Of a stretch of DNA of 64,000 bases, positions 3,094-53,369 are shown in pieces. The position numbers and the translations under genes were made by a program. Source of the DNA: Haliotis rufescens (lineage: Eukaryota); NCBI RefSeq assembly GCF_023055435.1, contig NW_025964002.1:3782001-3846000 (forward strand), in the 5' to 3' direction. How positions within the stretch are numbered: the stretch's first letter is position 1; every line of letters begins with the position of its first letter. The notes beneath the pieces were generated by a model. The model was not told the DNA's origin. It saw nothing but the letters and a program-made list of their open reading frames with translations, and did no database searches.

Positions 3094-3099
3094 ACTTAC

Positions 3100-7327: not shown

Positions 7328-7456
7328 CTTGTGTAGTTGTTGTTTCAGCTGTTGTGGGACCACCTGTCTGAGTTGTAGCAGCTGGAGTTGTGGTTGTAGC
7401 AGATGTTGTTGTACCATGCGTCGTAGCTGTAGCAACCGGAGCAACTGAAGTTGTCG
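7328..7456 (-). CDS. Exon: Thr-rich linker
   Basis: 129 nt, AG/GT bounded, phase 1-1. Confidence 0.8.
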
Positions 7457-10152: not shown

Positions 10153-10281
10153 CTTGTGTAGTTGTTGTTTCAGCTGTTGTGGGACCACCTGTCTGAGTTG
10201 TAGCAGCTGGAGTTGTGGTTGTAGCAGCTGTTGTTGTACCATGCGTCGTAGCTGTAGCAACCGGAGCAACTGAAGTTGTCG
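10153..10281 (-). CDS. Exon: Thr-rich linker
   Basis: 129 nt, AG/GT bounded, phase 1-1. Confidence 0.8.
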
Positions 10282-29875: not shown

Positions 29876-31172
29876 TACTCAACCACAAAAGTTCCCGTGA
29901 CACCAATATTTTAGTGTATTTTTCAAACAAGTAAAGTTTGGTTTTCTATATTGCAGTACATGTATGGAATCGAGTCACAAAACCCATTTGCTACAGAAAA
30001 GCATGCATTCCATGCAAAAGTTGACTTTTATGCAAGCCCCATGCATTTTACTACCCAAGAATGGGTATAAAAAACACGTGCGTTAACGGGATTCCGTATG
30101 CATTGTTTAGCATCGTGCTGACAACAACCGCTCAGAAAAACAACAAAATTACGCAATTATTCAACATTACGAAATGAGACGCCTGTCCGAAAATGAGCAT
30201 CTGCGAGTCATTGGTATGCTTGAAGCAGGATCGAGTCAACGTGATGTTGCAAGACAATTTAACGTCCACAGAAACACCATTTGGTGTTTATGGCAACGTT
30301 GGCAACAGACGAATGCAGTCAGAGACAGGCCACGCGTTACCAATAATCGACAAGACAACTGGATTCGAACAACACACCTACGGAATCGTTTCAAGCCAGC
30401 AACAGTGACTGCAAGAAGCATACACTGACGAGTCTCGTTTTCACCTCAGTCACAGCGATGGACGGGTTCAAGTGTACCGACGTCGAGGTGAACGTTACGT
30501 CAATCATTGTGTCATGGAAGAAGATCGGTTCGGGGGCGGCAGCGTTATGGTATGGGGTGGGATTACAGCAAGACAGAGGACCCGTTTGATAGTGGTAGAG
30601 GGAAATCTCAATGGACAGCGCTACCGCGACGAGATCATCGGCCCTGTTGTTCTACCGCTTTTGCGTCATCATGGCCAGGCATTACCTTTCAACATAACAA
30701 CGCCCGGCCTCATATTGCTCGACTTGTGCAGGATTCTCTTCAACAAAACAACGTGAATGTCATCCCCTGGTCGGCCCGCTCCCCTAATCTCTTACCAATC
30801 GAGCACATGTGGGAAGAGATGGATCGGCGCCTTCGACGGCAACCACGTGTTCCACAGACACTGCGAAACATGGTCCAGTAGATATGGACAGATATCCCAC
30901 AGGACTTTGTGCGACGCCTGGTCCATTCCATGAGACGATAATGTGTTGCTTGCATCTCAACCAGAGCTGGACACACACGCTATTGATTTGTAAATGACAT
31001 TTTGGCATGTTCATGTTTTTTTATGAAATTTTCTGAAGTCAGTATGGCAAATTAAACCATTTGAAGACTTACAGGATTCTTTTATCTGTTGCAAACCGAA
31101 ATTGTTTCAGATTTTGTAAAAAAACAACAACTTTGCATTAAATCTTATTCAATGTGACAGGAACTTCTGTTG
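29876..31172 (+). mobile_element. Tc1-family DNA transposon, non-autonomous copy 1
   Basis: TA|TACTCAACCACAAAAGTTCC left TIR and degenerate right TIR. Frameshifted transposase: HTH at 30174, TDESRF, GGGSVMVWGGI, NNARPH, SPNLLPIEHMW. Confidence 0.92.
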
Positions 31173-31429
31173 GGTCTATCCATGGTACGACTCAGAATAT
31201 GTAGAGGGCGTCATGGAAAAAGATAAACACAAATTCTTTGGAAAAGGCCCGTATACAGTCTCAGACATATCCAGAACAACAAACCAGATCTTGTACTTTT
31301 TTATAAATCCAATGAAATCATTTGTATCATTCAATTTTCTGTCCCTTTTGACACTAATGTGATTGACAAGATTCAGGAAAAACATAGCAACTATGCAGAC
31401 CTCGTTTTCGAAATGTCACGCTTTCATCC

Positions 31430-31810
31430 AAGAACCAAGTTGTCCGACTCCACACTGTTCTCGCCTTAGATTTGGTACCACCCAATCTGTTGACTGACAC
31501 TGGGAGAGTAACCGGGTTTGCTACCAGGAATACCACCCTACTGGCATTCTGGGTAATGCAGAAGGCTGCAGTGTTGGGGAGTCTATAGATTCTCTGAAAC
31601 GTTCTGCTTGGATTCGGCTAGGCAGCTCATTCCGGGAGAAGACCCATTTGCTGTCTGGGCTGCGTGAAGAGGGGGCAAGGGCCCTCAGCTGATGATGAGC
31701 CTCACCAGTTTGCCTGTGCCAGGATCACGCAAACCCTTTTCGCTGCATTTTTAATTGTAATCTTACATAATAACAAGAAGAATATCAGCAACAGCAACAA
31801 CAACAATATT
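31430..31810 (+). mobile_element. Possible 3' fragment of an RLE-type (R4/Dong-like) non-LTR retrotransposon
   Basis: Decayed frame ...VLALDLVPPNL...MQKAAVLGSL*IL*NVL resembles the R4-clade C-terminus QKAxxLGTxxILRxVL; followed by an (AAC/AAT)-rich tail. Confidence 0.4.
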
Positions 31811-31824
31811 GGGTGTTTGACATT

Positions 31825-32070
31825 TTTTAACGCCGCACTCAGCAACATTCAGCTATGTGATGGTGGTCTGTAAATCATCTAGTCTGGACCAGACAATCCA
31901 ATGATTGACATCATGCTCGTCGATCTACGTAATTGGGATACGATGACATGCATTAATCAAGTCAGCGAACCTGACCACCCGATCCCATTAGCCTCTTACG
32001 ACAAAGATAGTTGCTTCTTACCACAAGCATAGGTTTCTGAAGACCAATTCTAACCCGGAATCTTTACGGG
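31825..32070 (-). mobile_element. Short retroelement family A
   Basis: Colinear with 1843-2097. Confidence 0.8.
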
Positions 32071-32791
32071 AATAATAATAATGATAATGAAAATAATAAT
32101 ATTTATAACAACCATAGTAATAAAGAGTACAACCCACTGGGTATGGTACTGACAGAATTAGAAATATAATAAGGGCAAACCAGGATTCGAACCCACAATC
32201 CTAGTCTCTGGTATGTCTGCACGAAGAATTGTTGTGTCTGGGCCAACTGTGTCCCTATGACATTAAGAATGCGACATGAGCGGCGAATGTTAACAACACC
32301 AATGACCTTCGTAGACTCAGAAAACAGTCCAACATGTTTGGGTATTCTCTGGGCAGAGTCACTCATTGATAATTATCTTCAGTTGGTCACGAAAGTGAGT
32401 TTTCGACTAAGTAATGTCTGTTGCTTGATAAATTAAGTCATACTGGTACCACTTTGTTGCGGGGATGTTGTTGACAAAAAAATATCACAGTAATCAGAGT
32501 ACGGGATTCGAACCAACGATCTGCGGATCCTGGTATGTCCGAGAGATGCAACCGACGCCTTAGATGACTTGATGATACAGGAACGAATTTAATAATGGAT
32601 TAAGAAACACAATTATGTGTGTTAAGTGAATTAGTCTTCTCAAAAGGGAACCGCAAAGTGCTAGTTTGCATATTTCACACTTCTTGAAAAAGTAATGTAG
32701 ATATATGATACGAGAGAGCAATAAGTACGTTTGTTAAAAACATGAGAGTATCAAACATTCTAAACCTAAATTATTTTTTCAGGTCAGTAAG

Positions 32792-35700
32792 ATGTCCGCT
32801 GGCAAAGACTGTTCAGTGATTCCCGTCGTGGTCGGTGTCGACGTGGGTGGAACCAACACCGATGCAGTTGTTCTCACCAAAGGCAAGATAAAATCCACAG
32901 TGATTGCCGCAGTGAAGGAGCTGACGTCAGCGGATGTCACTACCGGTGTCCGAACTGCCATTCATGCCGTTCTCCAACAGGCCACAGACAATGGACATAG
33001 GGTAGCTGTGGTGCAGGTCAACATTGGAACCACGCACTTCGTAAATGCTGTTGTACAGGGTAGAGGACTTGCACGGGTCTCTGTGATACGTCTTTGTGGA
33101 ACTGCGTCACACGATCTGCCACCTTTCAGCGATTTTCCCTTGGATCTCAAAGAAACCATATATGGCAGCGTTCACCTTGTTGATGGTGGGTACAGGTTTG
33201 ATGGCAGGGAAATTGACCCTGTTGATGAGAAACAAATAACTGATACCCTTTGTCAAATAAAGGAAAAGAAGATAAGAAACATTGTTGTGTCAGGAATATT
33301 CTCTCCTGTCAAAACCGACCAAGAAGATGCTGTTTTACAGTTAATCGCAAGCAAGTATCCTGAAGCAACAGTTACACTGTCGCACATGATTGGACATTTT
33401 GGATTACTGGAAAGAGAGAATGCTGCAATACTAAACGAATGTCTGAAACCACTTTGCAAGAAAACAGTTGAAGGTTTTCAAACTGCACTATCAAGTGTTG
33501 GTCTGTCCTGTCCAATGTATTTCACACAGAACGATGGCACCATCATCAGCTCTGATGAAGCTGTGTTGTATCCAGTGTACACCTTTGCATCAGGACCCAC
33601 AAACAGCATGCGAGGGGCAGCTTTCTTATCGGATGTCAAGGATGCCATCGTTCTTGATATTGGCGGCACAACCACAGATGTAGGCGTTCTGAAGAACAAG
33701 TTTCCAAGAGAAGCTTCCACCCAAGTAAAGATTGGAGGGATCAGGACAAACTTTCGAATGCCAGATGTTCTCAGTTTTGGCCTTGGTGGTGGGTCCTATG
33801 TCACAGAAAACACAGACGCCTCAGTTACTATTGGACCGCTCAGCGCAGGGTTCAACCTAAAGAATGAAGCTTTCATATTTAGTAACGGCGACACCGATTC
33901 TGGACGAAGCTTAACTACGTCTGATGTTGCTGTTGCAGCTGGATTGATGAAACTTGGAGATGCAAAATATGTTCAACATTTATCAAAGGAATTGGTTGAG
34001 AAAGTGCTTGCAAAGATAGTTATCATGATTGAAGATGCAATCGATGTGGTCAAGCTGAGTGCGGAAACACTACCCGTCCTTCTTGTTGGTGGTGGAAGTG
34101 TTCTGGTTGACAGGAATCAGGAAATTAAAGGTGCCTCAGAAGTCATTATCCCTGAGTATTCAGGAGTTGCCAATGCCATTGGTGCTGCACTGAGTCAGGT
34201 GTCTGGCAGTTCTGATAGTATTGTATGTCTTCAGGATATGGTGGATCAAGAACGGATGGATCAAGCTGTTGGAGCCGCTGTGGCAGCAGTGGATGATAAA
34301 GATGAAAAGAAAGTCGAGCTCGCTGCAGAACAAGCTCGAAAGCCATTTTTTGTCAATGCCAGAGACACAGCTTTAGAAAGTGCAGAACGTAAAGCTAAGC
34401 AAATAGCAGTAGATTGTGGTGCTGACCCAACATCTGTTGAAATTACACAGAAGGAGGACATGACTCTGTCCTATATCCCAGGTCAAGCAGTGAGAATAAA
34501 GATAAAGGCTGTTGGCAATTTGGAAAATTTACAATCAGCAAATGCAAAAGAGTGGATCCCAAGCCCTTTGAAAAAAGATGAATCAATGTCTGGTGGCAAA
34601 CTTGAAAAACAAACAGGGACCTCAACTGGGAAAACACTTGCAGTTGGCAATGAGGCAGGAGATGCAACAAAACACCCAGTGGATCCTCAGATCGACCCTC
34701 ATACTGGAGAGTGGATTCTCTCGGAATGGGATTTAGAGGCAATTGTGATTGGTGCAGGCATATTTGGGTGTGGCGGTGGTGGAAATCCTCATATTGGCAG
34801 ACTCAGGGCTCTTGCGGATATACGAAAAGGCAAGAAAATACGTATAATTTCCCCAGAGAAACTGTATGAAAAGGCAGATCCAGACAATGATCTCGTGGCT
34901 ATAGTAGCATTCATGGGGGCCCCATTGATTATGTATGAGCAGTTGGTGTCCTCAAAAGAAACAACTGGAGCGTTGAGATGTTTGGATGATCTGTACACCA
35001 TTGGTGGCTACAAGGATGGCATGTTGCAGAACACAGAGGGAGTTGAAATCAAGACGAAAGATGGGATGGTATATATAGAGAATTACCAGACCAGGGTATC
35101 AATGGATAAACCTAAACGGATAATTGCTTTGATGTCTGGTGAGATCGGAGGAATGAATGCGATTGAACCTCTTCTTGTGTCAGCTGACCTGGGCCTGCCT
35201 GTTGTTGATTCTGATGGAATGGGACGGGCATTTCCTGAGTTGCAGATGTTTTGTCCATATATGTATGGAGTGTCTGCTCATCCTGCAGCTTTAGTAGACG
35301 ACAGAGGCACACGAGCTGTAATGCTGCAAACACCTTCACCAAAACATCTTGAAAATCACTTCAGAGATACAGTTATTGGGATGGGATGTTCTGCTGGACT
35401 CTCATTCAATCCTCTCACCAAACCTGTGTTAATGGATAAGACAGTTCTATATTCCGTCAGCCACGTGTGGAAGGTCGGAGATGCTGTTCTAAAGGCCAGA
35501 ATAGAAAAGACGTCCCCCATTGAGGCCATTTTGAAAACAGAAAAATCTGTCCACATCATCACTGGCAAAATCAGGGACGTGCAGAGGGAAACAAGTGGAG
35601 GATTCAACAGAGGGAAGGTTATCATTGAAGGTCTTGACAGTTTTTCTGGACAAACCATACTGGTTGAATTTCAGAATGAAAACTTGATTATTTTCCCCTT

Positions 35701-35971
35701 GGATGCCGAGAAGAAAGCTGGGAAGCCAGTTGCATGTGTCCCAGATCTCATCACCATCATTGATGCAGACACAGCTGAGCCTATTCCGACAGAAGAGGTG
35801 AAATATGGAATTCGAGTCGCTGTCCTTGTACTGGCCTCTCCAGATATACTGCGAACCGATCAGGCTTTGCGATTTGTTGGCCCTAAAGCTTTCCATTATG
35901 ACAACGTTGAGTTCAGACCAATCGGAGACGCGTATCCTGTTCAACCAATACCACCAAGGGACTCTCTTTAA
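32792..35971 (+). CDS. Hydantoinase/oxoprolinase-A (HyuA-like ASKHA ATPase)-DUF917 fusion, paralog 1, 1059 aa, single coding exon
   Basis: 3180-nt ORF. HyuA motifs GVDVGGTNTDAV, GTTHFVNA, LERENAAILN, QNDG, SGPTNSMRGAA, DIGGTTTDVG, GLGGGS, VANAIGAA. DUF917 motifs GCGGGGNP, MGAP, EIGGMN, DSDGMGRAFPELQM, FQNENL, VPDLI, TEEVKYG. Splice acceptor 9 nt upstream of the ATG. Confidence 0.93.
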   Translation: MSAGKDCSVIPVVVGVDVGGTNTDAVVLTKGKIKSTVIAAVKELTSADVTTGVRTAIHAVLQQATDNGHRVAVVQVNIGTTHFVNAVVQGRGLARVSVIRLCGTASHDLPPFSDFPLDLKETIYGSVHLVDGGYRFDGREIDPVDEKQITDTLCQIKEKKIRNIVVSGIFSPVKTDQEDAVLQLIASKYPEATVTLSHMIGHFGLLERENAAILNECLKPLCKKTVEGFQTALSSVGLSCPMYFTQNDGTIISSDEAVLYPVYTFASGPTNSMRGAAFLSDVKDAIVLDIGGTTTDVGVLKNKFPREASTQVKIGGIRTNFRMPDVLSFGLGGGSYVTENTDASVTIGPLSAGFNLKNEAFIFSNGDTDSGRSLTTSDVAVAAGLMKLGDAKYVQHLSKELVEKVLAKIVIMIEDAIDVVKLSAETLPVLLVGGGSVLVDRNQEIKGASEVIIPEYSGVANAIGAALSQVSGSSDSIVCLQDMVDQERMDQAVGAAVAAVDDKDEKKVELAAEQARKPFFVNARDTALESAERKAKQIAVDCGADPTSVEITQKEDMTLSYIPGQAVRIKIKAVGNLENLQSANAKEWIPSPLKKDESMSGGKLEKQTGTSTGKTLAVGNEAGDATKHPVDPQIDPHTGEWILSEWDLEAIVIGAGIFGCGGGGNPHIGRLRALADIRKGKKIRIISPEKLYEKADPDNDLVAIVAFMGAPLIMYEQLVSSKETTGALRCLDDLYTIGGYKDGMLQNTEGVEIKTKDGMVYIENYQTRVSMDKPKRIIALMSGEIGGMNAIEPLLVSADLGLPVVDSDGMGRAFPELQMFCPYMYGVSAHPAALVDDRGTRAVMLQTPSPKHLENHFRDTVIGMGCSAGLSFNPLTKPVLMDKTVLYSVSHVWKVGDAVLKARIEKTSPIEAILKTEKSVHIITGKIRDVQRETSGGFNRGKVIIEGLDSFSGQTILVEFQNENLIIFPLDAEKKAGKPVACVPDLITIIDADTAEPIPTEEVKYGIRVAVLVLASPDILRTDQALRFVGPKAFHYDNVEFRPIGDAYPVQPIPPRDSL

Positions 35972-37298
35972 CGCAGACGCTCTATAACTGGGATGCTCTC
36001 TCACTTGGACTCTCTACTGCGGACATTCAGATGCTCTCTAACGCAGATGCTCTATTACTGGGATGCTCTCTCACTTGGACTCTCTACTGCGGACATTCAG
36101 ACGCTCTCTAACGCAGACGCTCTATAACTGGGATGCTCTCTCACTTGGACTCTCTACTGCGGACATTCAGACGCTCTCTATAGCAGATGCTCTATGACTG
36201 GGATGCTCTCTCACTTGGACTCTCTACTGCGGGCATTCAGACGCTCTCTAACGCAAATGCTCTATTACTGGGATGCTCTCTCACTTGGACTCTCTACTGC
36301 GGACATTCAGACGCTCTCTAACGCAGACGCTCTATAACTGGGATGCTCTCTCACTTGGACTCTCTACTGCGGGCATTCAGACGCTATCTATAGCCGATGC
36401 TCTATTACTGGGATGCTCTCTCATTTGGACTCTCTACCGCGGACATTCAGACGCTCTCTAACGCAGATGCTCTATTACTGGGATGCTCTCTCACTTGGAC
36501 TCTCTACCGCGGACATTCAGACTCTCTCTAACGCAGACGCTCTATTACTGGGATGCTCTCTCACTTGGACTCTCTACTGCGGACATTCAGACACTCTCTA
36601 ACGCAGACGCTCTATAACTGGGATGCTCTCTCACTTGGACTCTCTACCGCGGACATTCAGACGCTCTCTAACACAGACGCTCTATAACTGGGATGCTCTC
36701 TCACTTGGACTCTCTACCGCGGACATTCAGACTCTCTCTAACGCAGATGCTCTATTACTGGGATGCTCTCTCACTTGGACTCTCTACCGCGGACATTCAG
36801 ACTCTCTCTAACGCAGACGCTCTATTACTGGGATGCTCTCTCACTTGGACTCTCTACTGCGGACATTCAGACACTCTCTAACGCAGACGCTCTATAACTG
36901 GGATGCTCTCTCACTTGGACTCTCTACCGCGGACATTCAGACGCTCTCTAACACAGACGCTCTATAACTGGGATGCTCTCTCACTTGGACTCTCTACCGC
37001 GGACATTCAGACGCTCTCTAACGCAGACGGTCTATTACTGGGATGCTCTGTCACTTGGAGTCTCTACCGCGGACATTCAGACGCTCTCTAACGCAGACGC
37101 TCTATAACTGGGATGCTCTCTCACTTGGACTCTCTACTGCGGACATTCAGACGCTCTCTATCGCAGACGCTCTATTACTGGGATGCTCTCTCACTTGGAC
37201 TCTCTACTGCGGACATTCAGACACTCTCTATAGCAGACGCTCTATTACTGGGATGCTCTCTCACTTGGTCTCTCTACTGCGGGCATTCAGACGCTCCT
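35960..37298. repeat. 70-bp minisatellite, ~19 copies, overlapping the stop codon and 3' region of paralog 1
   Basis: Unit GACGCTCTCTAACGCAGACGCTCTATAACTGGGATGCTCTCTCACTTGGACTCTCTACTGCGGACATTCA; TCACTTGGAC recurs at 36001, 36071, 36141. Confidence 0.97.
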
Positions 37299-38014
37299 TA
37301 AACAGCTCCGACACAGGATGACACAGGGCGACATGCAGATTGTGAGGATGTAGGTCACTGACATTGTATGTAAATGGTACAGAAAAACATAGTGACTGTA
37401 GCAATACATTTGTACATAAGACTTTATAAAACTCAATTTAAATGGTTTTCCAAAGGTTTTGAAGAAAAATACATGGACACATTTAACTTTGGTGCTTCTC
37501 TATCTGTGAAGTATGACATCCTAAATATTCCTTCAGCAGGAGACGCCATCATTGTGATTTGACGAGGAACTAAACCTTGTGTGGTTTACTTTATTCTAAT
37601 TGTGGTTCCACTCAATAATCTATGCTTCATATGTTACCCAAAGATTAGTGTTAATTTGACCATGGTAGAATTAAGAGATACACCTACTGTATTTTCAATG
37701 CAGAGCTATGCTGCCTGTTGATTGACGGTACTTCATTTCACATTTTAAACCTCACGTTGCACACTTCGTCACAAATTCAATTTTTTTATAGTCGAACCTA
37801 CAGGTAACATATATGAAGCTTAGTAAGTTTATATCCAAATTAGACCACTGTGAAATTCAACTGACTGTAACTGAAGAAATATGTTTGGAACACAAATATA
37901 GAATATTGCTAAAAGCGGCGTAAAACCATATTCACTCCCTCACTAATGACCTGGTACTTCGATCTGAATCGCCCAATAACTTACAGGAATTTCATGGGTA
38001 CATATTGAAGTGGT

Positions 38015-38149
38015 CAACATGCATTAACCAAGTCAGCGAGTCTGACCACCCGATCCCGTTAGTCGACCCTTACGACAAGCACAGTCGCCTTTTACGGCAA
38101 GTATGGGTTGCTGAAGACCTATATATTCTACCCCGGATCTTCATGGGTC
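38015..38149 (-). mobile_element. Short retroelement family A, 5' half
   Basis: CCAAGTCAGCGAGTCTGACCACCCGATCCCGTTAGTCG...CCCGGATCTTCATGGGTC. Confidence 0.75.
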
Positions 38150-38600
38150 ACTCAGAGGCCGAGATATCTTAGAAACCCTAAAGGAGCACTTACAAGTAAC
38201 CATGGCTCCTGTGTAATTAGAATCTGGAGACACGTACTGATGTCAAGCGTAGGGAATTGGTTAGAACTGTAGCATCTATCATTTGTCAGGATTAAAAATT
38301 TCTGTTAGTCATTCATTACCACCTTTTTGACTTTTTGACAATGTTTCAAGATACAAGATAAAGCCCGATTGTTTTGAATTAATGAATTTAATAGGTTCAT
38401 TTCAATAGGTTCTACCTTGGAGTCTCAGCAGACGAATGTTACAAATCAATCAAAGCTCTTAATTTCATATACTTAGCATCAATGATAATTTCTGTTGGAA
38501 ATGGAACCAGTACATATGTAATCAAACATTTTGATTTAGCATAGGAACAAAGAAGGAAACTCCATCAAAGTCTTGTGGGTATCAAACGTCTGTGACATGT

Positions 38601-41600
38601 TCACTCAGTTGGTGGAATTGGAACGGTTACTTTGCTTTGCCCAAATGGTTGAAATTTGACACTCTCTGGATACTGAAAAGCCTGCGGGCTGACATACTTC
38701 AAGGCAGTGTCAGTTCTAAGTATGTCCGCAGACGCTATCACAATAACGGAAACCCTCATGCCGTACCGGACCTCCTCCGTTGTGATTGGCTCAGCAGTAT
38801 CAGCGTCAATGATAGCAATGAGGTCAGGGACGCACGCAATGACGTCACCTTCGTCATTGTTCTCACCTAGAGGTATTATTACTAAATTCTCGTTTTGGAA
38901 ATTGATGAGTACCTTTTGTCCAGAATACTTCTCTAACCCCTCGATGATGACACGACCTTTGTTGTAGCCACCTCTGGTCTCCCTTTGAACATCTCTGATC
39001 TTCCCAATCATGACATGAATAGATGTCTCTGTTTTAAGAATTGCTTCAATGGGCGACGTCTTCTCTATTCTTGAACGGAGGATGGCGTTTCCCAGTCTCC
39101 AAGCGCGACTGATGGTGTGCTGGACACATTTCGTCAGAACATCCTCTTTGACAAGAGGAGAGAAAGAACAGCCAGCTGAACATCCCATTTCGGTCACAAC
39201 ATCCCGGAAGTGATGTTCAACAAGAGTTGCGGTAGGAGCTTCTAGCATCACAGCCCGACGGTTTCTGTCGTCCACCAGTGCTGTAGGATATGCAGGAAGG
39301 CCATACATGTACGGGCACATCATGCTGAGCTTCGGGAATGCTCTCCCCATTGTGTCAGCATCCACAACGGGAAGATTAAGATCGGCAGCGACTAGGTATG
39401 GTTCAATGGCATTCATTCCTCCAATTTCAACAGCCATTAAAGCTTTGATTTGTTTTCCTTTGACTGAAGGGGAACCTGAGTTGTGACTGCCCGTTTGTTG
39501 GTAATCACTTATGAACCGCATGCCAGCTTTCTCTTCAATCGTGACTCCTGACTTGTTGTCTAGTGTCCCGTTTTGGAACCGGCCAATGTTAAATACATCC
39601 TCTATACATCTCAGCGCTGCAGATGTTTCTTTAGATGACACAAGCTGTTCATACATTATCAGTGGCGCTCCATAAAAACAGACAATGCTAACGAGATCGT
39701 TTTCGGGATCTGCATTCATCAGCAGACGTTCTGGGGTTATGATTTTAATTTCTTTCCCACTCCGAACAGCTTCTAAAGCGCGGAGCCTCCCAAGGTGGGG
39801 ATTTCCTCCGCCTCCACATCCGAAAATACCAGCTCCAACAACAATACATTCGATGTCCCATTCTGATAAACTCCACGCCCCAGTTTCAGGGTCAATTGTG
39901 GGATCCATGGGAACCTTGGTTGCATCGTTTCCATCATCCTTTCCGGACAGTTTAGTTCCCCCAGCAGACACCTCTTGTTTTGAATGCATAGTTTTCAGTG
40001 ATAGAGATCCCAAATTTTCATCTTCAGGAGCAAGCCATTTTTCAACCTTGACATTTCTCTGCACATGGTCCGCGAGATCGCCAACTACCTTCACCTTGAT
40101 TCTTGTCGCTTGACCCGGCATGTAGGACAACGTCATATCTTGTTTTTCTGCAACGTGTACAGTGGACGAATCAGCCCCTGCCTCAACTGCTACAGCTGTA
40201 GCTCTTGTTATAGCTGAGGCTAAGGCTTCATCTCTTGCCTTAACGATGAATGGTTTTCTTGCAAGCTCTTCTGCCATTTCGCTTTCCTTTCCATCAGGAT
40301 CTTCTGTTACCCTGCCAAGAGCCTCCTCCACACATTTGTCCATGGCTGTCCTGTCTATCATGTCTAATATACTGACGACGTAATCAATACTACCTGACAC
40401 CTGACTAAGAGCAGCCCCAATAGCGTTTGCGACACCATAATGTTGCGGCATTAAGACTTCAGAGGCACCAGTTAGATTTCGCTTCAGGTCCACAAGGATA
40501 CTGCCACCTCCCACGAGGATTACAGGCAGTGATTGATCACTCAGTTTAACCTTGTCAATAGATGCCTCAATCATTTCATGCATCCGGTCCAGCGCCATCG
40601 TTACAACAGTTTCTGAAATGCCTTGTATGAAGTCCTTGTTGCCAAGCTCAACTAAACCTGCAGCAACAGCTATGTCTGTTGTTGTGATGGATCTCCCTTC
40701 CTCTCCAGCCTCGCTGCTGAAGACCAGTGCCTCGTTCTTTAAGTTGAACCCAGCACTCAATGGTCCCACGGCAATGCTTGAGATCCCATCTGACTCGTTT
40801 GTTCGAGGAATTACATACGAACCTCCTCCAAGACCAATACTTAGAACATCGGGCATGCGGAAATTGGTCCTGACGCCACCTATCTTGACCTGAGTTGATG
40901 CTTCTCGTGGGAAGCCATTCTTCAAAACACCAACATCGGTCGTTGTACCTCCGATGTCAACCACTATTGCATCCTCTATCGCTGACAGGAATGCTGCTCC
41001 TCGCATGCTGTTGGTAGGCCCGGAAGCGAATGTAAAGACCGGATATTGTCTAGCCTTGTCTGAACTGATGATGGTTCCGTCATTCTGCGTGAGGTAGATA
41101 GGACAGTCCAGGCCAATATTTCCTAAGGCGTCTCTGAAACCATCGATTGTTCGTTGACAAAGTGGCTTGAGGCATTCGTTCAGAATTGCAGCATTTTCTC
41201 TTTCAAGCAACCCAAGATGACCAATGTCGTGTGATAGCGTCACGCTGGCATCTGGCGTTATTTCCCTGAGGATTTTCTCCACTTCAAGTTCCTGATCATA
41301 TCTAATGGGGGAGAAAACCCCACAAACAACAAACCCTATGTCTCCTGATGCTTTCACAATCTTCTCAATCTCGTCCCTTTTGACATCATCAATCGCCCTT
41401 CCATCAAATCGGTACCCACCAGCAACAAGATGCGTCGTATGACAAATGATATCCTTCAAATGCTTTGGAAAGTCGCTAAATGGCGGAAGAGCTTCTGACA
41501 CTGAACCACAGAGACGGATAACTGACACCTTCGCTAAATCCCTCCCCTGTACTGCAGCGTTTACGAAGTGGGTGGTTCCTATGTTGACTTGGACAACACC

Positions 41601-41804
41601 GACAGACGTCCCAGACCTGCACGCTTCACTCAGGACCTTGCTGACCGCTCTCTGCACCCCGGTAGTCACGTCACTGGTGGTAAGCTCCTTCACACCAGCA
41701 ATGACCACGGGCTTGTCGACGTCCTTCGTTATGACAACGGCATCAGTGTTGGTCCCTCCTACATCTACGCCTACGACGACTGGAATCACGGGCTTGTCGC
41801 TCAT
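38601..41804 (-). CDS. HyuA-like-DUF917 fusion, paralog 2, 1067 aa, single coding exon
   Basis: Same motif set as paralog 1. Start placed at the ATG at 41804 (MSDKPVIPVVVGVDVGG) by alignment to paralog 1; the ORF-track extension to 41906 runs through a tttcag acceptor at 41814-41815. Confidence 0.93.
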   Translation of the reverse strand: MSDKPVIPVVVGVDVGGTNTDAVVITKDVDKPVVIAGVKELTTSDVTTGVQRAVSKVLSEACRSGTSVGVVQVNIGTTHFVNAAVQGRDLAKVSVIRLCGSVSEALPPFSDFPKHLKDIICHTTHLVAGGYRFDGRAIDDVKRDEIEKIVKASGDIGFVVCGVFSPIRYDQELEVEKILREITPDASVTLSHDIGHLGLLERENAAILNECLKPLCQRTIDGFRDALGNIGLDCPIYLTQNDGTIISSDKARQYPVFTFASGPTNSMRGAAFLSAIEDAIVVDIGGTTTDVGVLKNGFPREASTQVKIGGVRTNFRMPDVLSIGLGGGSYVIPRTNESDGISSIAVGPLSAGFNLKNEALVFSSEAGEEGRSITTTDIAVAAGLVELGNKDFIQGISETVVTMALDRMHEMIEASIDKVKLSDQSLPVILVGGGSILVDLKRNLTGASEVLMPQHYGVANAIGAALSQVSGSIDYVVSILDMIDRTAMDKCVEEALGRVTEDPDGKESEMAEELARKPFIVKARDEALASAITRATAVAVEAGADSSTVHVAEKQDMTLSYMPGQATRIKVKVVGDLADHVQRNVKVEKWLAPEDENLGSLSLKTMHSKQEVSAGGTKLSGKDDGNDATKVPMDPTIDPETGAWSLSEWDIECIVVGAGIFGCGGGGNPHLGRLRALEAVRSGKEIKIITPERLLMNADPENDLVSIVCFYGAPLIMYEQLVSSKETSAALRCIEDVFNIGRFQNGTLDNKSGVTIEEKAGMRFISDYQQTGSHNSGSPSVKGKQIKALMAVEIGGMNAIEPYLVAADLNLPVVDADTMGRAFPKLSMMCPYMYGLPAYPTALVDDRNRRAVMLEAPTATLVEHHFRDVVTEMGCSAGCSFSPLVKEDVLTKCVQHTISRAWRLGNAILRSRIEKTSPIEAILKTETSIHVMIGKIRDVQRETRGGYNKGRVIIEGLEKYSGQKVLINFQNENLVIIPLGENNDEGDVIACVPDLIAIIDADTAEPITTEEVRYGMRVSVIVIASADILRTDTALKYVSPQAFQYPESVKFQPFGQSKVTVPIPPTE

Positions 41805-42008
41805 ATTTCTGTACTGAAATACAAACACGTCATGTGTCAAAATGAACTGCATAGAACACATATGAATCTGTATATTACCTAATGATATTGCTCCAATAAC
41901 GAGCACAAATGGTATGTGATGACAAATTTAAGCTTCCTAATCAGGTCTATAACTCAGCCACGTTTTAGTGACGTTTCCAATGTATTAAAGCTGTTCGTAT
42001 TAGCATTC

Positions 42009-42157
42009 TGAGTGAGTGAGTATGGCTTTACGCCGCTTTTAGCAATATTCCAGCAATATCACCACCAGAAATGGGCTTCACACATTGTACCCATGTAGGG
42101 AATCGAACCCGGCTCTTCGGCAAGAACGGTTAAACAACCAGGCTACCCGACCGCCCC
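42009..42157 (-). mobile_element. SINE family B
   Basis: Colinear with 2926-3093; flanking direct repeat TTAGCATTC. Confidence 0.8.
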
Positions 42158-42784
42158 ATTTTAGCATTCCGAAGTGCCATGATATGCTTGATACACCCAT
42201 GATTGGGTGTTTGTAACATGATATTTGATTTGTAAAGACAAAACCATTATCGAAAACACACATACTACACCCTATATAGGTTTACAGACACTGTGATTTA
42301 CCTTGACGTCCAGCTGAGGAAAGATTCTGAGTTGAATATTGAAGCAATGTATGAGTGAGCACGTATAACACCTAGCTGGTGTAAGCTCTTTAATCCAGGT
42401 CACCAGCTACGTGTATTGTTATCACTTTGGGAAACTAGGCCAAAGTCTAATGGACATTATATTGTCCGGTCACAGGCTTGTTAAGGTCCTTCGTTATAAC
42501 AACGACTTCGGTGTCCATGACGACTGGACGGCGAGAGCTTGTCAGTCATATTTCTATGCTAAAATGTAACCAAAGTTCGCTATCGTGCGATAGGCAACGT
42601 GATTAATGAATCATTGCTAATGAGTGTATAGCTGTCCCCTTCAAACTATCACCCACGCTTAACATCGTTTATCAATATTTTAGATTTCAATCAGGGCTAT
42701 TCTTACATTTCATTTCATCATCCTCATAAAATAATACCCCTTGAATATTTATGTTTACATCTTGGTAACTCATACCAAATGTTT

Positions 42785-43045
42785 AGCGCAGTGGGTTTTA
42801 TTTGTGGTTAAATGATTCGCTCGTCCCGCCGAAGACCCAGGTTCTGAACCCAGTTCGCCCAGATTATATTTTGTTTGGTTTGTCAGTACCGTAAATATAT
42901 ACCTACACCGTGGGTTTCACCCAAGTGGAAAATCTTTATTATATACAACACTTCGGGCTTTCCTGCCACATCACGTTGACACGCCGTTATATAACTGAAA
43001 TACTGTTCAAATCGGCGTAAAATCATCTTCACTTACTGACTCACT
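42785..43045 (+). mobile_element. Degenerate tRNA-headed SINE (B-like head, D-like 3' part)
   Basis: GTGGTTAAA..TTCGCTCG..CGCCGAAGACCCAGGTTC head; CTTCGGGCTTTCCT...GGCGTAAAATC...CACT tail. Confidence 0.55.
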
Positions 43046-43157
43046 TGTGAGTCGGCTTCACTTAACTTGTCACACATGCCACATATAAGTAAAATCGATT
43101 TCATGTTGGGAAAGATCACATTCACATTATTGAAGTAGAGGCTCGATTTCGGTAAAC

Positions 43158-43472
43158 GACCGCCTCCGATGTACCAGAGAGAGGAAGGTCGGTGGTTCGA
43201 TTCCCGGCCGCGTCGTTCGCGACGTTAAAAAAATGTACTTGTTGTTACCCTGCCTGGTGTTCGGTATTAAGGGAATAAAACAAGGACAGGTCGGTTCGGA
43301 CCAGTATGCTGTGTCTGAGTGGAATATCCATACTAAACGACATCATGGTACATGTATCTCCTTGGTCTAGCCCTGTAACATTGGACTAGTACAGACAGCC
43401 ACAGACACACGTGCATACGTCGCTAAAACGTGCAAAGACGTTGAACGCGACATTAAACTCAATGTCACCCTT
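43158..43472 (+). mobile_element. SINE family C, diverged
   Basis: ACCGCCTC...GGTTCGATTCCCGGCCGCGTC...GACGTTAAAA...CGCGACATTAAACTCAATGTCACC. Confidence 0.75.
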
Positions 43473-43674
43473 ACCTTCTTGTTTGAAATATACCAGCTGC
43501 GTTCCCCATATTCGTTAGCCGTAACAAGGAGTACAAGTACAAGTACAAGGAGTTTGGGGAATTCATTGTTGTGTCTGTATTGTCTTTAAGTTTCCTGTTG
43601 TGTGATGCACCTTGGTTGACGATACCTACAGAACCGAGCAGCGGGCAGTATGATCCTTCATTGGGGCTATAAGA

Positions 43675-43845
43675 GAGTGAGTGAGAAACTATGGTTTTAC
43701 GCCGCTTTGATCAATATTTCCGCAATATCACAACGGGTGACACTAGAAATGGGCTTCACACATTGTTCCCATGTAGGGAATCGAACCCGGGTCTTTTGGC
43801 CTTAGGGGTGAACGTTCTAACTACTTGGCTACCCCACAGCCCCCG
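43675..43845 (-). mobile_element. SINE family B
   Basis: AGAAATGGGCTTCACACATTG...GGAATCGAACCCGGGTC...GGCTACCC. Confidence 0.8.
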
Positions 43846-44187
43846 CTTTTGGAGAAAAACGTTTTGATTAGCGAGTGAGTGTTTTTCCGCCTCGGGTATT
43901 TGCTGCGATGAACAGTACAGTGAATATTACGCCGATGAATTGATCTCCATCAGAGACTAACACGAAGACTGGGTGGTTTGTAATGGCTGAATGTGTGCCA
44001 TTCGTGCTCATGCTATCAACCATTGGTTAACCTGGTACAGACTCGATTATTCACGGGCCCCAGTGATATGATTATGTATTGTTTATATATTTGAAAAGCT
44101 GGTGGCAAGGAATCCCTTTTCGAATTGTACCAGGTGAAAGGCCAGTTTTTGTTTCTGCCTGATAGATGCGCCAACATTATCAATATA

Positions 44188-45569
44188 TACTCAACAACAA
44201 AAGTTCCTGTGACACCAATATTTTAGTGGATTTTTCAAACAAGTAAAGTTTGGTTTTCAATATTGTAGTAGATGTATGGAATCAAGTCACAAAACGCAAC
44301 TGCTACAGGAAAGCATGCATTCCATGCAAAAGTTGACTTTTATGCAAGCCCAATGCATTTCACTACCCAAGAATGGGTATAAAAACATGTGCGTTAACGG
44401 GATTCCACATGTATTGTTGAGCATCGTGCTGACAACAACCACTCAGAAAAACAACAAAATTACGCAATTATTCAACATTACGCCTGTCCAAAAATGAGCG
44501 TCTGCAAGCCATTGGTATGCTCAAAGCAGGATCGAGTCAACGTCATGTTGCAAAACAATTTAACGTCCACAGAAACACCATTTGGTGTTTATGGCAACGT
44601 TGGTAACAGACGAATGCAGTCAGAGACCATCCTCGGAGTAGCAGGCAACGCGTAACCAATAATCGACAAGACAACTGGATTCGAACAACACACCTACGAA
44701 ATGGATTCCAGCCAGCAACAGTGACTGCAAGAAGCATCCCTTGCCTTCGACGAATATCTTCACAAACCGTACGTCGCCGCCTCAGATGTGCAGGGATTGT
44801 CGCCAGAAGACCCGCCAGACGTCCCATTTTGACAGGAAACCACCGTCAAACAGGTCTACAGTGGTGCAGACAGCGTTTACGCTGGACGGCCATGCAGTGG
44901 GGACAAGTTCTATTCACCTCAGCCACAGCGATGGACGGATTCGAGTGTACCGACGTCGAGGTGAACGTTACGTCAATCATTGTGAAATGGAAGAAGATCG
45001 GTTTGGGGGCGGCAGCGTTATGGTATGGGGTGGGATTACAGCAAGACAGAGGACCCGTTTGATAGTGTTAGAGGGAAATCTCGATGGACAGCGCTACCGC
45101 GACGAAATCATCGGCCCTGTTGTTCTACCGTTTTTGCGTCGTCATGGCCCAGGCATTACCTTTCAACATGACAACGCCCGGCCTCATATTGCTCGACTTG
45201 TTCAGGTTTCTCTTAAAAAAAACGACGTGAATGTCATCCCCGGGCCGGCTCGGTCCCCTGATCTCTCACCAATCGAGCACATGTGGGATGAGATGGATCA
45301 GCGCCTTCGACGTCAACCACGTGTTCCACAGACACTCCAGGAATTTCAACCAGAGGTGGACACACACGCTATTGATTTGTAAATTGACATTTTGTCAGTT
45401 TCATGGGGTTTTTTTATGAAATCGCGCATTTTCTGAAGTCATTATAGCAAATTAAACCATTTACAGGAGTCTTTTATCGGGTGCAAACCGAAATTGTTTC
45501 AGATTTGGTAAAAAACATAACTTTTTATTAAATCTTATTCAATGTCTCAGGAACTTTTGTTGTTCAGTA
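44188..45569 (+). mobile_element. Tc1-family DNA transposon, non-autonomous copy 2 (same family as 29876-31172)
   Basis: TA-flanked TIRs TACTCAACAACAAAAGTTCCTGTGACA / TGTCTCAGGAACTTTTGTTGTTCAGTA. Transposase motifs GGGSVMVWGGI, QHDNARPH, SPDLSPIEHMW; stops, frameshifts and loss of the first catalytic Asp (TDESRF). Confidence 0.93.
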
Positions 45570-47554: not shown

Positions 47555-49170
47555 CTAAGTTCCATCACTGATGTCGTGTGTGTGGATGTACCTATCATCC
47601 ACAGACACGTACATCACATTATCCTCATCCACATACACAGCTCGTGGATCGGACACCTCATCAGCAAAGGTGAGTATATCTCTCACAAACCCCCCTGTTG
47701 GGCTCAGCTGAATCACCTTATGGTTGTTCCTGTCTGCTATGTAGATGCCTCCTGCCCCGCCCTGACACACCCCGAGCGGACGACTCATCATAAAGCTCTC
47801 CCCGGGCTGGTACTCAAACTCCAGTGATCCGTCAATATTCACACACACAACCTTGTTACATTTCCAGTCCGACACGAGGAGCTTGTTGTCCAGTGTTGCA
47901 TGCAAGAACAGAGGTTTAACAAACATGTCAACACCAAAACATCGGAGTCTCGTCCCTGAGAGATCGATGACGTCAATGACGCCTACCTCCTCCCCACTTG
48001 CTGCCAGTGTTGTAGAGTCCAAGCAGGCCAACCCGATATAGCGTAGCTGGGTTTTGATTATCGAGTCTTTTTGCAGTTTGGGACTTACAGAAAGAACCAC
48101 TAATTGTTTCTTCTTTGGAACTGCGGTGACAGCCTTTGGCGAGTCTAAGTTTGTAATACCGTATGGGTGACTGTCCAATTTTAGATAACTGCTGCTGGAT
48201 TTTCCCGTTGATATATGAAACAAATGCACCATTCTATCTTCAGGTTGTGTTACAACGATAGTTTTAGTGCCCTCAAACGAGACCACTGTTAGGTCATGCA
48301 ATCCTGTCCTCCCGATATCAAACCGTTTCACGTCACTGCACTTGTTCTTATTGTCTGTCGCCCCGGTTATGTGGCCAACTGTCACCCTTCGCAAAGACGT
48401 CATCAATGAGCTTTTGTTGTCCATAAACTTAACATCCACAATACCTTTGGTGTCCAGTTTATCAGCTTCTCTCGACTTGTCATTGTCGTCAGCAGCTGAG
48501 AATATCTTGTAAACTTCATAATGGTCCATTGTGGTTGCAGATGACAAGGCTTTGTTGGCAAACATTATCCTTTGATGGGCATCCTTCAGCTGCATCTCGT
48601 TATGTCTGACATCCTTCATCAGGACCAGATCAGCCTCATCCTTCCTCTGCTTCAGTCGCCCTTTCAACTGGCTCTGCTGATGTCGTATTTCGGCGACAAG
48701 TTCGTCGCATGTGTCGTCGATCCCTTTTTCTGCCGCTTCATAAGTGCTAGCATATTGTTCAACCTTTTCATTCCAAACAGCGATGCGTTCTTCCAGTTTA
48801 GGGATCTTGGTTTTCAGGTCATATTTCAGCTTCTGCAAAAGGGCATCTATTCTTAAAGCTGATTCTGCTAGTGGTACCACCTTATTACATCCTCTATGGT
48901 CCAGGATGCAACATCGGGAACACACGGCTTCATCGCAGTCCTCACACAGGAGGTCAATGACCTCATCTTCATGCTTGTCACATCTTGCACGTCTTGGTAC
49001 TGTTTTTATCACGTCCCCCGTGACATCAGATGCTGTGTGGGATGTATGAAGTTTTCTATGTACCCTTTCACAGTCCGAGCACATCGACTCTCCGCATTCC
49101 GGACACCAGACAGCGGCATTCTTTGTTTTTTCCTCATCCGCACAGATGCTGCAGTCTGTGTGTTCAGCCA
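47555..49170 (-). CDS. TRIM-NHL gene exon 3: B-box1, B-box2, coiled coil, NHL-type beta-propeller
   Basis: CSIC...WCPECGESMCSDCERVH, CDKH..CEDCDEAVCSRCCILDHRGC, heptad region, NHL-like repeats (PYGI, LLVSDW, PLGV, IYIADRNNHKV, PRAVYVD). ttacag| acceptor in phase 1. Confidence 0.85.
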
Positions 49171-49197
49171 CTGTAACATGAGCACATGACTCTGGAT

Positions 49198-49358
49198 GAG
49201 TGAGTGAGTTGAACTTTATGCCGCTTTTAGCACACAAGCAATATCACAGCAGGGGACACCAGAAATGGGCTTCACACATTGTACCCATATGGGGAATCGA
49301 ACCAGGGCCTTCAGCGTAACGAGAAAACGATTTAACCACAAGGCTACCCCACTGCCCC
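49198..49358 (-). mobile_element. SINE family B in TRIM intron 2
   Basis: TSD GACTC(T/C)GGATGA at 49188 and 49359. Confidence 0.85.
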
Positions 49359-50931: not shown

Positions 50932-53369
50932 GGTAACACAGGTGGAACGAAACTGAAAACGGCATGAGTTACAATTTACTACACAGTAGGCATGAAAACT
51001 CTCATTGTTTTGCCAGGCTATTTTTTTATCTCCTTATATACCCTTGCTGAATACTCCAATGTACACGTGGCTTATATAACTGAATCCAAAACAGAAATAT
51101 ATTCATGTATTTGCAGTGATATTTCTATCACACGTACAGAGATATGGGCACGCTGTAAAAGTGCATCTTTTAGGCCTGACAGAAACGTATGATCGTGGAT
51201 GAGAATCTCAGACTCTCCATTGTTATGAATCTTGGAGTGGCAGCAATATAACTGTGGTCGTTGGTTTCAGCAGAGTGGGAAACATCTTAAGATAACTTCA
51301 CTTCTGGGCCGTGATATAAATGAAATACTGTTTAAGAACACGTACAATGACAGAAATTTAACGGTTATAATATACCCAGTAAGGATATCGGCAAGTGTGT
51401 AAGCCTGGCGTTTATGACGATGAGACGTACTTCCATATAGCCTTTATATAGATGTTTGCAGCTACCTTCCGCGACTTACAAATCATCCCTACAAAACACC
51501 CTCTCGTACTTGTCGCACACTATGCTTTGTTAGGTGCGACATATGCTTTACAAACCTCGGTTACCTGTCCCATTCACATACAAACATACATACCTCACAT
51601 AAATATGTTAATAGATAAATGTATTCACTACAGGCAATAGTTAACAATTCGCAATATACGTGTCTTCAATGATAGACATATGTTGGTGAAAGCAGTCTAT
51701 GGCGGCTCATTCATTGCAGAGGGTTACTGATTTATCCCAAGCCTTGATTCGTGTTTTGAAAACCCAAGTCAACCCTACAAATGGATAACCCTGGAATGTG
51801 TCACTCGCTTGATCAGCCATGATCTCAATTCAAGACACATTATTCTTTTCATATAAAAAATAAATGCCAGTGTTATCACATTCTAATAATGACTTTACAC
51901 ACATCAACATATGTTGACTTACCTAAGTGATAGAATTAGGGATTAGGCGGGATTACCGGATTCATGGTTCTAACGATCCTGAAAATTCAGAAATGTGGGG
52001 AAATCAAATTCCATTTTATTGTTTGTTTTTATAAATGCCAAGGCTGATAATTACACTGTTTTTGTTCATGGCCCAGACAAGTAGTACACACTTAATGCAC
52101 TGTTCCCTCTAATACTTGACGTGGGTTCATCGGTACTTCAATCTGTCTATGACTTTGTTCTCACAAAAACGTGGAAATGGAAGGTGGAAAATTCAAAATA
52201 AAAACTTATCCTACCGACCTATATTTTCGCAAAAGGAATAAAAATAAACTCACTGAAGGTCTAATTATATTCTTATTTCAGTCTCGACCATCGGCCAAAT
52301 GTTTCTCATACCACAATCCGTCAGACAACCAATAAAGGCCTTGATTTATTACAAATATAAACTGTGCAGTATTCACGTTATATATACCTGCTTTAAGATT
52401 TAACGGCACACGTTTTCAAACACAAATTTACGTATGGTAAATAGGTAAGTTTATACATTAAACATCCACGATTAATGTTTAACCTGCGAGCAAATATCCG
52501 CATTGCTTCACTGCTACGGGTGGAGCAGGACATGCTTACCCTTTTCGCGAACACCTGGTGTCATCACTGATTCAGTGATCAGTTCACGTCATTTTCACCA
52601 CTATTTGCCTTCTGTGCCCAATGGAATCTGTGTCCGCGCATATTGGAGACTTATCCTTCACTACCGTTGACGTCTTGTATCAAATCTTTTCCTGATCATC
52701 AGTAAATTATTTTACAGCATCGGTTGGGATCAAATAACCATTGTCTACCTTTCTTAATCCCTCTTACCTTGATTGGATCGGCGACCTGTGTTATGTTCCG
52801 CCATGGAGTGCGTTTACCTGGTTGCCATGGGTAACGGCTGGAAGAGGGTTGCCCAGTGCGTCCATAACACCTTGAAGAACGCCAGGCCGAAATAGGTGTT
52901 ATAACATAGATACAATGAGCAACGTCAGTGATAGATAGGGACTAGGGTAATATTCTAACTTCTATATGAATTCAGATATAGTGCAGCAAGGTTCTTTAAA
53001 CGCTTTAAACGTTAACCGCTGTCTGTGTACAATGGGTGTCGGGTCATGTTGACATACATACACTGTACACCTGGGTCCCGTTTACACGAAGCGATCTCCT
53101 CGTTACGACTGTCGTTAAGTATGGGACTTGCGACCACATTGGCTCTAGTGTCGCTTTGTGAACGAGGCCTTTGGTGTCGTTGTACAAATCAATCTTAGCG
53201 CTACGACTATCGTAAGTCTATGTTGAAGAATGGGAGTTGCGACCACCTTAGCGTTAAGGTTGCTTTGTACAACAGCAACCAGACCCTCGCTCTACGAAAC
53301 GATTTTAGAGCTAGTCGATTGTAACTCCCTTACACGCGACCAGCTGGTGAAACATACAGTGATCTGGTA

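Follow-up and report, generated by a model that had tools for sequence, protein, structure and literature searches.

A tandem cluster of HyuA-DUF917 fusion genes in the abalone Haliotis rufescens and its place in a eukaryotic family

The gene cluster in the abalone genome

We analyzed a stretch of 64,000 nt of the Haliotis rufescens genome (assembly GCF_023055435.1, contig NW_025964002.1, positions 3,782,001 to 3,846,000; the window hereafter), which harbors two genes for a hydantoinase A (HyuA)-like ATPase fused to a DUF917 module. Open reading frame (ORF) 1, or paralog A1 (32792..35971, + strand), encodes 1059 aa, and ORF2, or paralog B (38601..41804, - strand), encodes 1067 aa counted from the ATG; the mechanical ORF of the latter extends past this ATG to a GTG at 41906. 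As the first-pass annotation, made from the DNA letters, had described, both are intact and uninterrupted and lie tail-to-tail, and the ORF calls give each a single coding exon and a spacer of 2.6 kb. The two proteins are 61% identical over their full length. A Pfam scan found the same domain order in both, Hydant_A_N, Hydantoinase_A, S-Me-THD_N, and S-Me-THD_C (the former DUF917), all above curated cut-offs, and no match to Hydantoinase_B (PF02538) in either. The overall initial observation, a HyuA ASKHA ATPase followed by DUF917 without hydantoinase B, is thus confirmed. These genes are new but unremarkable members of a known, functionally uncharacterized eukaryotic family, which NCBI already annotates as 'uncharacterized protein'.

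A third intact copy, A2 (C224:3769823-3772978, 1052 aa), is located ~45 kb upstream of ORF1 and ~12 kb before the window start. Its protein shares 91% identity with that of ORF1 and is the same as H. rufescens LOC124147265 (100% identity). Across the 1.33-Gb assembly, DUF917 was matched by A2, A1, and B only, all in one cluster within 55 kb of one contig. The gene family here is a three-gene tandem cluster, not a pair.

In A1, the HyuA-like ASKHA ATPase module (32831..34033, +) consists of Hydant_A_N (aa 14-185) and Hydantoinase_A (aa 208-414), with the phosphate-binding motifs at aa 17-24 and 289-296 present. A linker without Pfam match (~aa 491-646; 34262..34729, +), which is poorly conserved, leads to the DUF917 module (34730..35923, +) consisting of S-Me-THD_N (aa 647-844) and S-Me-THD_C (aa 850-1044). 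Within this module, a conserved loop (aa 712-721; 34925..34954, +) includes the invariant E716 and is predicted to contact HyuA residues 104-109, 169-170, and 203-206.

The three peptide blocks quoted in the first-pass annotation are identical in ORF1 and ORF2 despite 7-10 differing third codon positions per block. Between A and B, the proportion of synonymous differences (pS) was ~0.8 and the nonsynonymous divergence (dN) was 0.31; the ratio of dN to synonymous divergence (dS) was not computable for this pair because synonymous sites were saturated. For A1 and A2, dS was 0.17 and dN/dS was 0.29. When A1 and B were compared by region, dN was 0.47 in the linker versus 0.28 in the domains. Conservation of at least 95% among 70 family members outside Haliotis defined 124 alignment columns, the ASKHA phosphate motifs included; ORF1 departed at none of them, ORF2 at one, and A2 at two. 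From the identical blocks with silent changes, and from a dN of 0.31 at saturated pS, both copies in the window are judged to be under purifying selection, as had been proposed. By these distances, the A/B duplication is old and the A1/A2 duplication recent. ORF1 is closer to the A copy of H. cracherodii (96% identity) than to its own A2, so the A1/A2 duplication predates the split of H. rufescens and H. cracherodii. ORF2 is 97.6% identical to the H. cracherodii B copy.

Paralog B differs from the family beside a conserved motif (39318-39440; ORF2 aa ~819-827), where GRAFPE-L-Q reads GRAFPK-L-S. The replaced E and Q, located just after an invariant R-A-x-P, are present in 68 and 73 of the 80 family members, respectively. 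The K/S change is common to the B copies of three Haliotis species, including H. cracherodii and H. rubra, and the E position also varies in a few other lineages (Nucella, Batillaria, fungi, Anaeramoeba, and Balamuthia). Since only one further conserved column is changed in B, this pattern of residues suggests altered specificity and not decay.

The microbial-looking domain architecture and the lack of coding introns could be taken to mean that the abalone assembly contains a mis-joined contig of microbial or fungal origin. We rejected this candidate, to which we give virtually no chance. The spacer between the two genes contains a ~133-bp interspersed, short interspersed nuclear element (SINE)-like repeat of the host (38017..38150), for which a first look gave >2400 candidate copies spread over many contigs of this genome; 40 scored copies were 90-93% identical. 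Animal genes flank both sides within the window, where the other ORFs of animal type encode a B-box/NHL (TRIM-like) protein, a leucine-rich repeat (LRR)-TIR (Toll-like receptor) protein, and a DDE transposase remnant. The three copies cluster on a single contig, the orthologous A and B copies of H. cracherodii, H. rubra, and H. asinina lie on contigs of 3-59 Mb, and the closest relatives are other gastropods, not microbes. The repeat copies and the flanking ORFs agree with the earlier argument against contamination, which had pointed to animal SINEs and spliced genes around the ORFs. Such integration into host DNA is equally expected for a native gene. The observed/expected CpG ratio of the fusion genes (0.5-0.7) and their GC content at third codon positions (0.37-0.45) were near or below those of two neighboring host ORFs. 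Sigma-70 promoter-like and terminator-like sites were at or below shuffled expectation, giving no sign of bacterial signals, and an Rfam search of 30000-44500 gave no match.

In public sequencing data, 19 runs from six studies hold at least half of the sampled words of ORF1. We mapped the assembled contigs of four such runs from four studies (50-110 Mb in total each, far below genome size) over 34500-40499. Contigs covered the 3' half of ORF1 in all four runs and ORF2 in three of them, with one contig of 3329 nt spanning the 3' 1.9 kb of ORF2. The ORF1:ORF2 depth ratio varied among runs, as for RNA, and the spacer had coverage holes. All long ORF1 contigs break at 35998, 27 nt past the stop codon, which is probably a repeat boundary. 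In each of the four runs, short spacer stretches in 35900-37300 and 37900-38300 exceeded the genes in depth tens to thousands of times, a sign of transcribed or abundant repeats; the depth over the 133-bp repeat was likewise extreme in every run. In all four runs, contigs also lie over another part of the spacer (37226..37926). The depth there tracks A1, not B, and this part may, with some uncertainty, belong to a long 3' untranslated region (UTR) of A1. This coverage fits RNA, and the abalone HyuA-DUF917 genes are probably expressed.

A pyrimidine tract followed by CAG precedes the ATG in all three copies. It ends 9 nt upstream of the start codon in A1 (32770..32782, +) and B (41814..41826, -) and 8 nt upstream in A2, and this acceptor-like motif is kept between A and B though silent sites are saturated. 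Its position makes a shared splice acceptor, and with it a 5'UTR intron, probable. The earlier description of the genes as intronless thus holds for the coding region but not for the sequence beyond it.

The ~3.2-kb uninterrupted coding exon in all three copies would also be expected from retroposition, in which a processed-mRNA copy replaced an intron-containing ancestor in gastropods, within a family already old in animals, and was then duplicated in tandem. Two isoforms of Branchiostoma, X1 and X2, differ by one internal 4-aa indel in the linker region, a pattern typical of alternative splice-site use that points to a coding intron in at least one lineage, and isoforms are annotated in several other animals. 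On the other hand, an acceptor at the same place in the 5'UTR of A and B is unlike a fresh retrocopy, though its gain before the duplication is possible, and it is equally possible that the family has had few introns ever since it came from prokaryotes. Weighing these points, we are inclined to doubt retroposition while giving it some room.

Phyletic spread and origin of the fusion

Full-length matches with all four domains were found in molluscs (gastropods, bivalves, and a chiton), other protostomes (the brachiopod Lingula, the nemertean Lineus, the priapulid Priapulus, and Nymphon), deuterostomes (three Branchiostoma species, three hemichordates, crinoids, sea stars, a brittle star, urchins, and sea cucumbers), and non-bilaterians (anthozoans, an octocoral, a hydrozoan, and the placozoan Trichoplax). 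Outside animals, they were found in Balamuthia, Naegleria, Willaertia, two Anaeramoeba species, Coccomyxa, Myrmecia, and basidiomycetes. The orthologs therefore spread over at least nine animal phyla plus Amoebozoa, Heterolobosea, Metamonada, Chlorophyta, and Fungi. The matches listed included no protein of a vertebrate, insect, or nematode, and the sea spider Nymphon was the only arthropod among the named ones.

The full-length tree (79 rows; IQ-TREE, LG+C20 with posterior mean site frequencies [PMSF], quick search, support by the Shimodaira-Hasegawa-like approximate likelihood-ratio test [SH-aLRT] only) separated animals from other eukaryotes (support 96). Groups of echinoderms (99), hemichordates (99), bivalves plus gastropods (100), and gastropods (99) were recovered, as were a Haliotis A clade (100) and a group of Haliotis B with Gigantopelta (97). 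Nymphon and Trichoplax group together (94) on a long branch within the protostome part of this tree, which may reflect long-branch attraction or a contaminated assembly. The chiton had no firm position. We also constructed trees of each domain with 30-39 prokaryotic rows, again by quick searches with SH-aLRT. Eukaryotes formed one clade in both the HyuA tree (99) and the DUF917 tree (96), and so did Metazoa (97 and 99, respectively). No prokaryotic sequence fell inside the eukaryotic clade of these domain trees, and the prokaryotes nearest to it were the group with the gene order HyuA then DUF917, as in the fusion. With a HyuA-like N-terminal half, a DUF917 C-terminal half, and grouping with animal members, the abalone proteins belong to the eukaryotic HyuA-DUF917 fusion family.

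Named members of this family, such as H. rufescens LOC124147265, Trichoplax TRIADDRAFT_26861, and Branchiostoma LOC109483812, have the same four domains and length, with 40-96% identity, and are annotated 'uncharacterized protein', 'Hydantoinase', or 'Hydantoin utilization protein A'. The abalone genes nest among the gastropod members and differ in nothing essential; their peculiarities are the three tandem copies and the K/S after GRAFP in paralog B.

A HMMER scan of 1.84 billion representatives for prokaryotic relatives found stand-alone HyuA-like proteins of ~515 aa with 40-45% identity, which a cluster look-up traced to Eubacterium, Spirochaetia, and Gammaproteobacteria. A first scan of genome contigs with the abalone protein as query found no prokaryotic relative; a second, with an alignment of the stand-alone bacterial HyuA-like proteins, gave 80 prokaryotic loci from many phyla, including haloarchaea. 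At 77 of the 80, the HyuA-like gene lies directly beside at least one DUF917 gene on the same strand, in two different gene orders. Firmicute loci have the order PucR regulator, NCS1 permease, DUF917, HyuA, and Proteobacterial and Chloroflexi loci have the order Opp/Dpp-type ATP-binding cassette (ABC) transporter, HyuA, DUF917 (at least one copy). HyuB was not present in the examined loci. The bacterial pairing of HyuA and DUF917 genes, which the first-pass annotation had mentioned, is borne out by these loci and by a Clostridioides difficile operon with the order permease, DUF917, hydantoinase (PMC12915319). DUF917 genes are also enriched beside hydantoin racemases in cyclodipeptide-oxidase clusters, in a report that called the family uncharacterized (preprint 10.1101/2023.09.25.559410). 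The prokaryotic context suggests that a small nitrogen compound is taken up and catabolized.

Many prokaryotic loci carry two to six DUF917 paralogs beside one HyuA-like gene. Four to six tandem paralogs with a single HyuA-like gene were seen at loci L053 (Phototrophicaceae), L060, L068, L059, and L067. Such loci hint at one ATPase serving several DUF917 partners, or at several substrates.

The paired prokaryotic proteins, a HyuA-like protein and a DUF917 protein of ~365 aa, are homologous to the abalone modules over their full length. Examples are C. difficile CDR20291_1616/1617 and loci of Eubacterium, Paenibacillus, Chloroflexi, actinobacteria, and haloarchaea. Their genes are adjacent and co-directional, and the HyuA-then-DUF917 order matches the fusion. 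They differ in being separate polypeptides, often with several DUF917 paralogs, encoded in uptake operons (NCS1 and PucR, or Opp-type ABC); they too are uncharacterized.

The first-pass annotation had proposed that the genes came from a microbe by horizontal transfer into the abalone or mollusc lineage and encode a two-step catabolism of thiohydantoins or thiohistidines, in which DUF917 removes sulfur and HyuA then opens the ring at the expense of ATP. Coding regions without introns, an architecture equal to the prokaryotic gene pair, and the contrast with the canonical HyuA+HyuB gene of the same genome, which is multi-exon, would fit such a transfer, and the nearest named families of the DUF917 half are indeed the NCBIfam thiohydantoin and S-methyl thiohydantoin desulfurase equivalogs. 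However, horizontal acquisition by abalones, molluscs, or animals is not supported, because of the spread of the orthologs and the metazoan and eukaryotic clades. Orthologs across opisthokonts and broadly species-tree-like trees contradict it, a pattern that the annotation itself had set against transfer, and the per-domain phylogeny with bacterial, fungal, and metazoan homologs places eukaryotes apart from prokaryotes. The acceptor-like motif before all three ATGs, which suggests a spliced 5'UTR, and the low desulfurase scores given below also speak against this proposal. Besides, HyuA is not known to open a ring alone, without a partner subunit. Taken together, the proposal is very improbable.

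These results remove what was an attractive case of microbe-to-animal transfer; the lack of coding introns together with bacterial-looking domains is insufficient for calling one. Instead, our reading is that a single event fused a prokaryotic gene pair with the order HyuA then DUF917, no later than the base of the eukaryotes sampled, that animals inherited the fusion vertically, and that abalones then duplicated it, first into A and B and later into A1 and A2.

Module identity and the proposed coupled enzyme

The HyuA halves scored 112.0 and 112.2 bits (ORF1) and 91.2 and 110.3 bits (ORF2) against PF05378 and PF01968, with cut-offs of 25.2 and 22.9. All three abalone copies have the ASKHA residues D17, G19, T21, T23, D24, D289, G291, G292, D296, and G433-G435, each at a column with at least 95% conservation across the family. 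The nearest solved relatives of this half are N-methylhydantoinase 7hk5 (E 1.9e-17), followed by caprolactamase 6yra and acetophenone carboxylase 5l9w. The N-terminal half is thus homologous to that of HyuA/HyuB hydrolases (5-oxoprolinase, N-methylhydantoinase, caprolactamase, and the acetophenone/acetone carboxylases) with its ASKHA motifs intact, but the abalone proteins lack the HyuB domain and have DUF917 in its place. The caprolactamase alpha-subunit model NF050156 (equivalog, cut-off 1000 bits) gave scores of 71.2 and 58.6, far from membership. All PF02538 matches in the genome are on C79:6750500-6766100 (+), where at least seven pieces of exon size are spread along 16 kb, presumably the canonical 5-oxoprolinase gene with the normal intron structure of an animal gene.

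The DUF917 halves scored 144-186 bits against the profiles PF06032 and PF20906 (cut-off 27). The AlphaFold2 model of this half of A1 had a predicted local distance difference test (pLDDT) score of 87.4 and a predicted template modeling score of 0.88. Its one fold match was 2o3i (CV_3147 of Chromobacterium violaceum, from structural genomics), with a Foldseek E of 1.5e-19 and a VIA Z of 39.6 at a root mean square deviation of 2.4 over 342 aligned residues. The fold is the same across the whole module, but 2o3i is a stand-alone protein with 21-25% identity. In a wide fold search, all other matches had Z of at most 6.1 and covered the C-terminal beta-barrel only, giving no structural link to HyuB.

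Thiohydantoin desulfurases are in the same Pfam superfamily (S-Me-THD_N/C). They are stand-alone proteins of ~350-360 aa without an ATPase partner. Against the thiohydantoin desulfurase model NF058529 (equivalog, cut-off 440 bits), ORF1 and ORF2 scored 65.0 and 57.2, and against the S-methyl thiohydantoin desulfurase model NF058532 (equivalog, cut-off 450 bits) they scored 54.6 and 57.9. Even the bacterial HyuA-paired DUF917 proteins reached only 83-120 bits with the thiohydantoin desulfurase model. Because these scores are far below the equivalog cut-offs, the HyuA-paired DUF917 branch is a different subfamily. The earlier statement that characterized DUF917 enzymes act on thiohydantoins agrees with the NCBIfam models, but the assignment of the abalone proteins to that function is not supported at the family level; by score, it is a resemblance, not membership. 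The abalone proteins may share the chemistry of these desulfurases, in which a group at C2 of an imidazolone or hydantoin ring is displaced hydrolytically.

We predicted the complex of A1 aa 1-500 with aa 640-1059, together with three controls. The score was 0.67, and the best control had 0.00. Of solved complexes, 51 of 78 attained this mark, against 2 of 108 mismatched pairs; for eukaryotes, the numbers were 39 of 65 solved pairs without a like older complex and 2 of 126 unrelated pairs. Runs agreed in at least 73% of contacts, and the pLDDT of the partner was at least 83. The best-defined contacts link E716 to HyuA residues 169-170 and 203-206, next to the invariant R208-E209-N210. E716 is invariant in eukaryotic and prokaryotic DUF917 and lies within a block identical between the paralogs. 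The model supports contact between the HyuA and DUF917 halves.

HyuA-type ATPases are known to depend on a partner subunit for the step from substrate phosphorylation to ring cleavage, as in 5-oxoprolinase and hydantoinase A/B. By analogy, the ASKHA module would bind ATP and phosphorylate, and so activate, the ring carbonyl of a small substrate (a cyclic amide, a ureide, or a hydantoin-like compound), like HyuA in 5-oxoprolinase, N-methylhydantoinase, and caprolactamase. DUF917, docked on the HyuA module in HyuB's place, would then displace the phosphate hydrolytically at the activated carbon. This step is formally the reaction of the distant stand-alone relatives, which remove sulfide or methanethiol from (S-methyl)thiohydantoins, with a C-S leaving group. 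The two substitutions of paralog B at almost invariant sites next to GRAFP may mean that its specificity has shifted. In this scheme, the ATP coupling, the composite active site, and the substrate class are all putative. A single coupled enzyme fits the gene pairing and the predicted interface better than two sequential enzymes, though the latter is possible; it is favored because of the near-obligate pairing, the single retained fusion, and the need of HyuA for a partner. We consider it probable that the abalone genes encode a vertically inherited, tandemly triplicated host enzyme, in which the ATP-binding HyuA-like module works with DUF917 on a small cyclic amide or ureide.

Alternatively, the fusion may merely co-express independent modules, DUF917 being an ATP-independent hydrolase and HyuA an ATPase with some other partner. 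Judging from their names, the stand-alone NCBIfam families of DUF917 work on their own, with no HyuA partner; the long linker shows little conservation, and the excess of DUF917 paralogs over HyuA-like genes in many prokaryotic loci also fits independent action. Against this stand the near-obligate neighborhood of the two genes across many phyla in both gene orders, the single fusion event kept across eukaryotes, the predicted interface formed by invariant residues of both halves, and the lack of HyuB in the examined loci and genes. Independent modules are therefore unlikely in our estimate.

Several points weigh against the coupled, vertically inherited enzyme. The deep eukaryotic branching departs from the species tree, fungi not being sister to animals, and there may have been ancient transfers between eukaryotes. 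Some long branches have odd placements (Nymphon with Trichoplax, Lineus near cnidarians). The RNA status of the sequencing runs is a guess that is not on record. The complex score expresses how confident the model itself is, and packing between domains of a single polypeptide need not mean a common active site. The characterized stand-alone DUF917 enzymes need no ATPase partner, going by the NCBIfam names, so that DUF917 could act independently, and 2o3i, the sole fold tie, is uncharacterized and gives no catalytic clue. A literature search (DUF917, ergothioneine catabolism, and hydantoinase transfer in molluscs) found no paper on the eukaryotic fusion or the paired bacterial enzymes, apart from incidental mentions, and no biochemical data on any HyuA-paired DUF917 protein.

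In its widest form, the coupled-enzyme model would make HyuA-like plus DUF917 an unrecognized class of ATP-dependent ring-cleaving or ring-substituting enzyme, with DUF917 replacing HyuB on an O-phosphorylated cyclic amide or ureide. From prokaryotic uptake operons, such an enzyme would have passed into a single eukaryotic fusion and been retained. In abalone, its triplication would serve the turnover of an N-heterocycle of the marine diet or of endogenous origin, possibly thiohistidine-derived (ovothiol or ergothioneine type) or of hydantoin or diketopiperazine type, with B retuned to a second substrate. We put this forward tentatively, as a speculative extension with the chances somewhat against it.

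The remaining interest is in the fusion family itself and in the coupled-enzyme model. An enzyme of ~1000 residues that amoebae and algae share with amphioxus, and that many marine invertebrates have, is uncharacterized, and the only characterized members of the DUF917 family are the distant stand-alone desulfurases. The near-obligate prokaryotic pairing and the predicted interface of invariant residues give a concrete, testable mechanism for DUF917.

Other features of the window

Near the window start, four ORFs of exactly 176 aa lie ~2.8 kb apart on the - strand (3092-12092; at 3092, 5925, 8735, and 11562); one of them was scanned and gave no Pfam match at E 0.001. Just beyond the 5' side of paralog B, a 213-aa ORF (44741-45382, +) matches the DDE_3 transposase domain and is probably a transposon remnant. 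The stretch 52001-56000 is strongly C-rich, with a GC skew of -0.36 to -0.67 and a GC content of up to 0.54 versus ~0.42 around it, and its ORFs at 53230-53745 and 54444-55163 have no Pfam match. The TRIM-like ORF (47555-49237, -) encodes 560 aa with B-box zinc fingers and an NHL repeat. The Toll-like-receptor-type gene (56272-58176, +) is a single-exon ORF of 634 aa with LRR and TIR domains.

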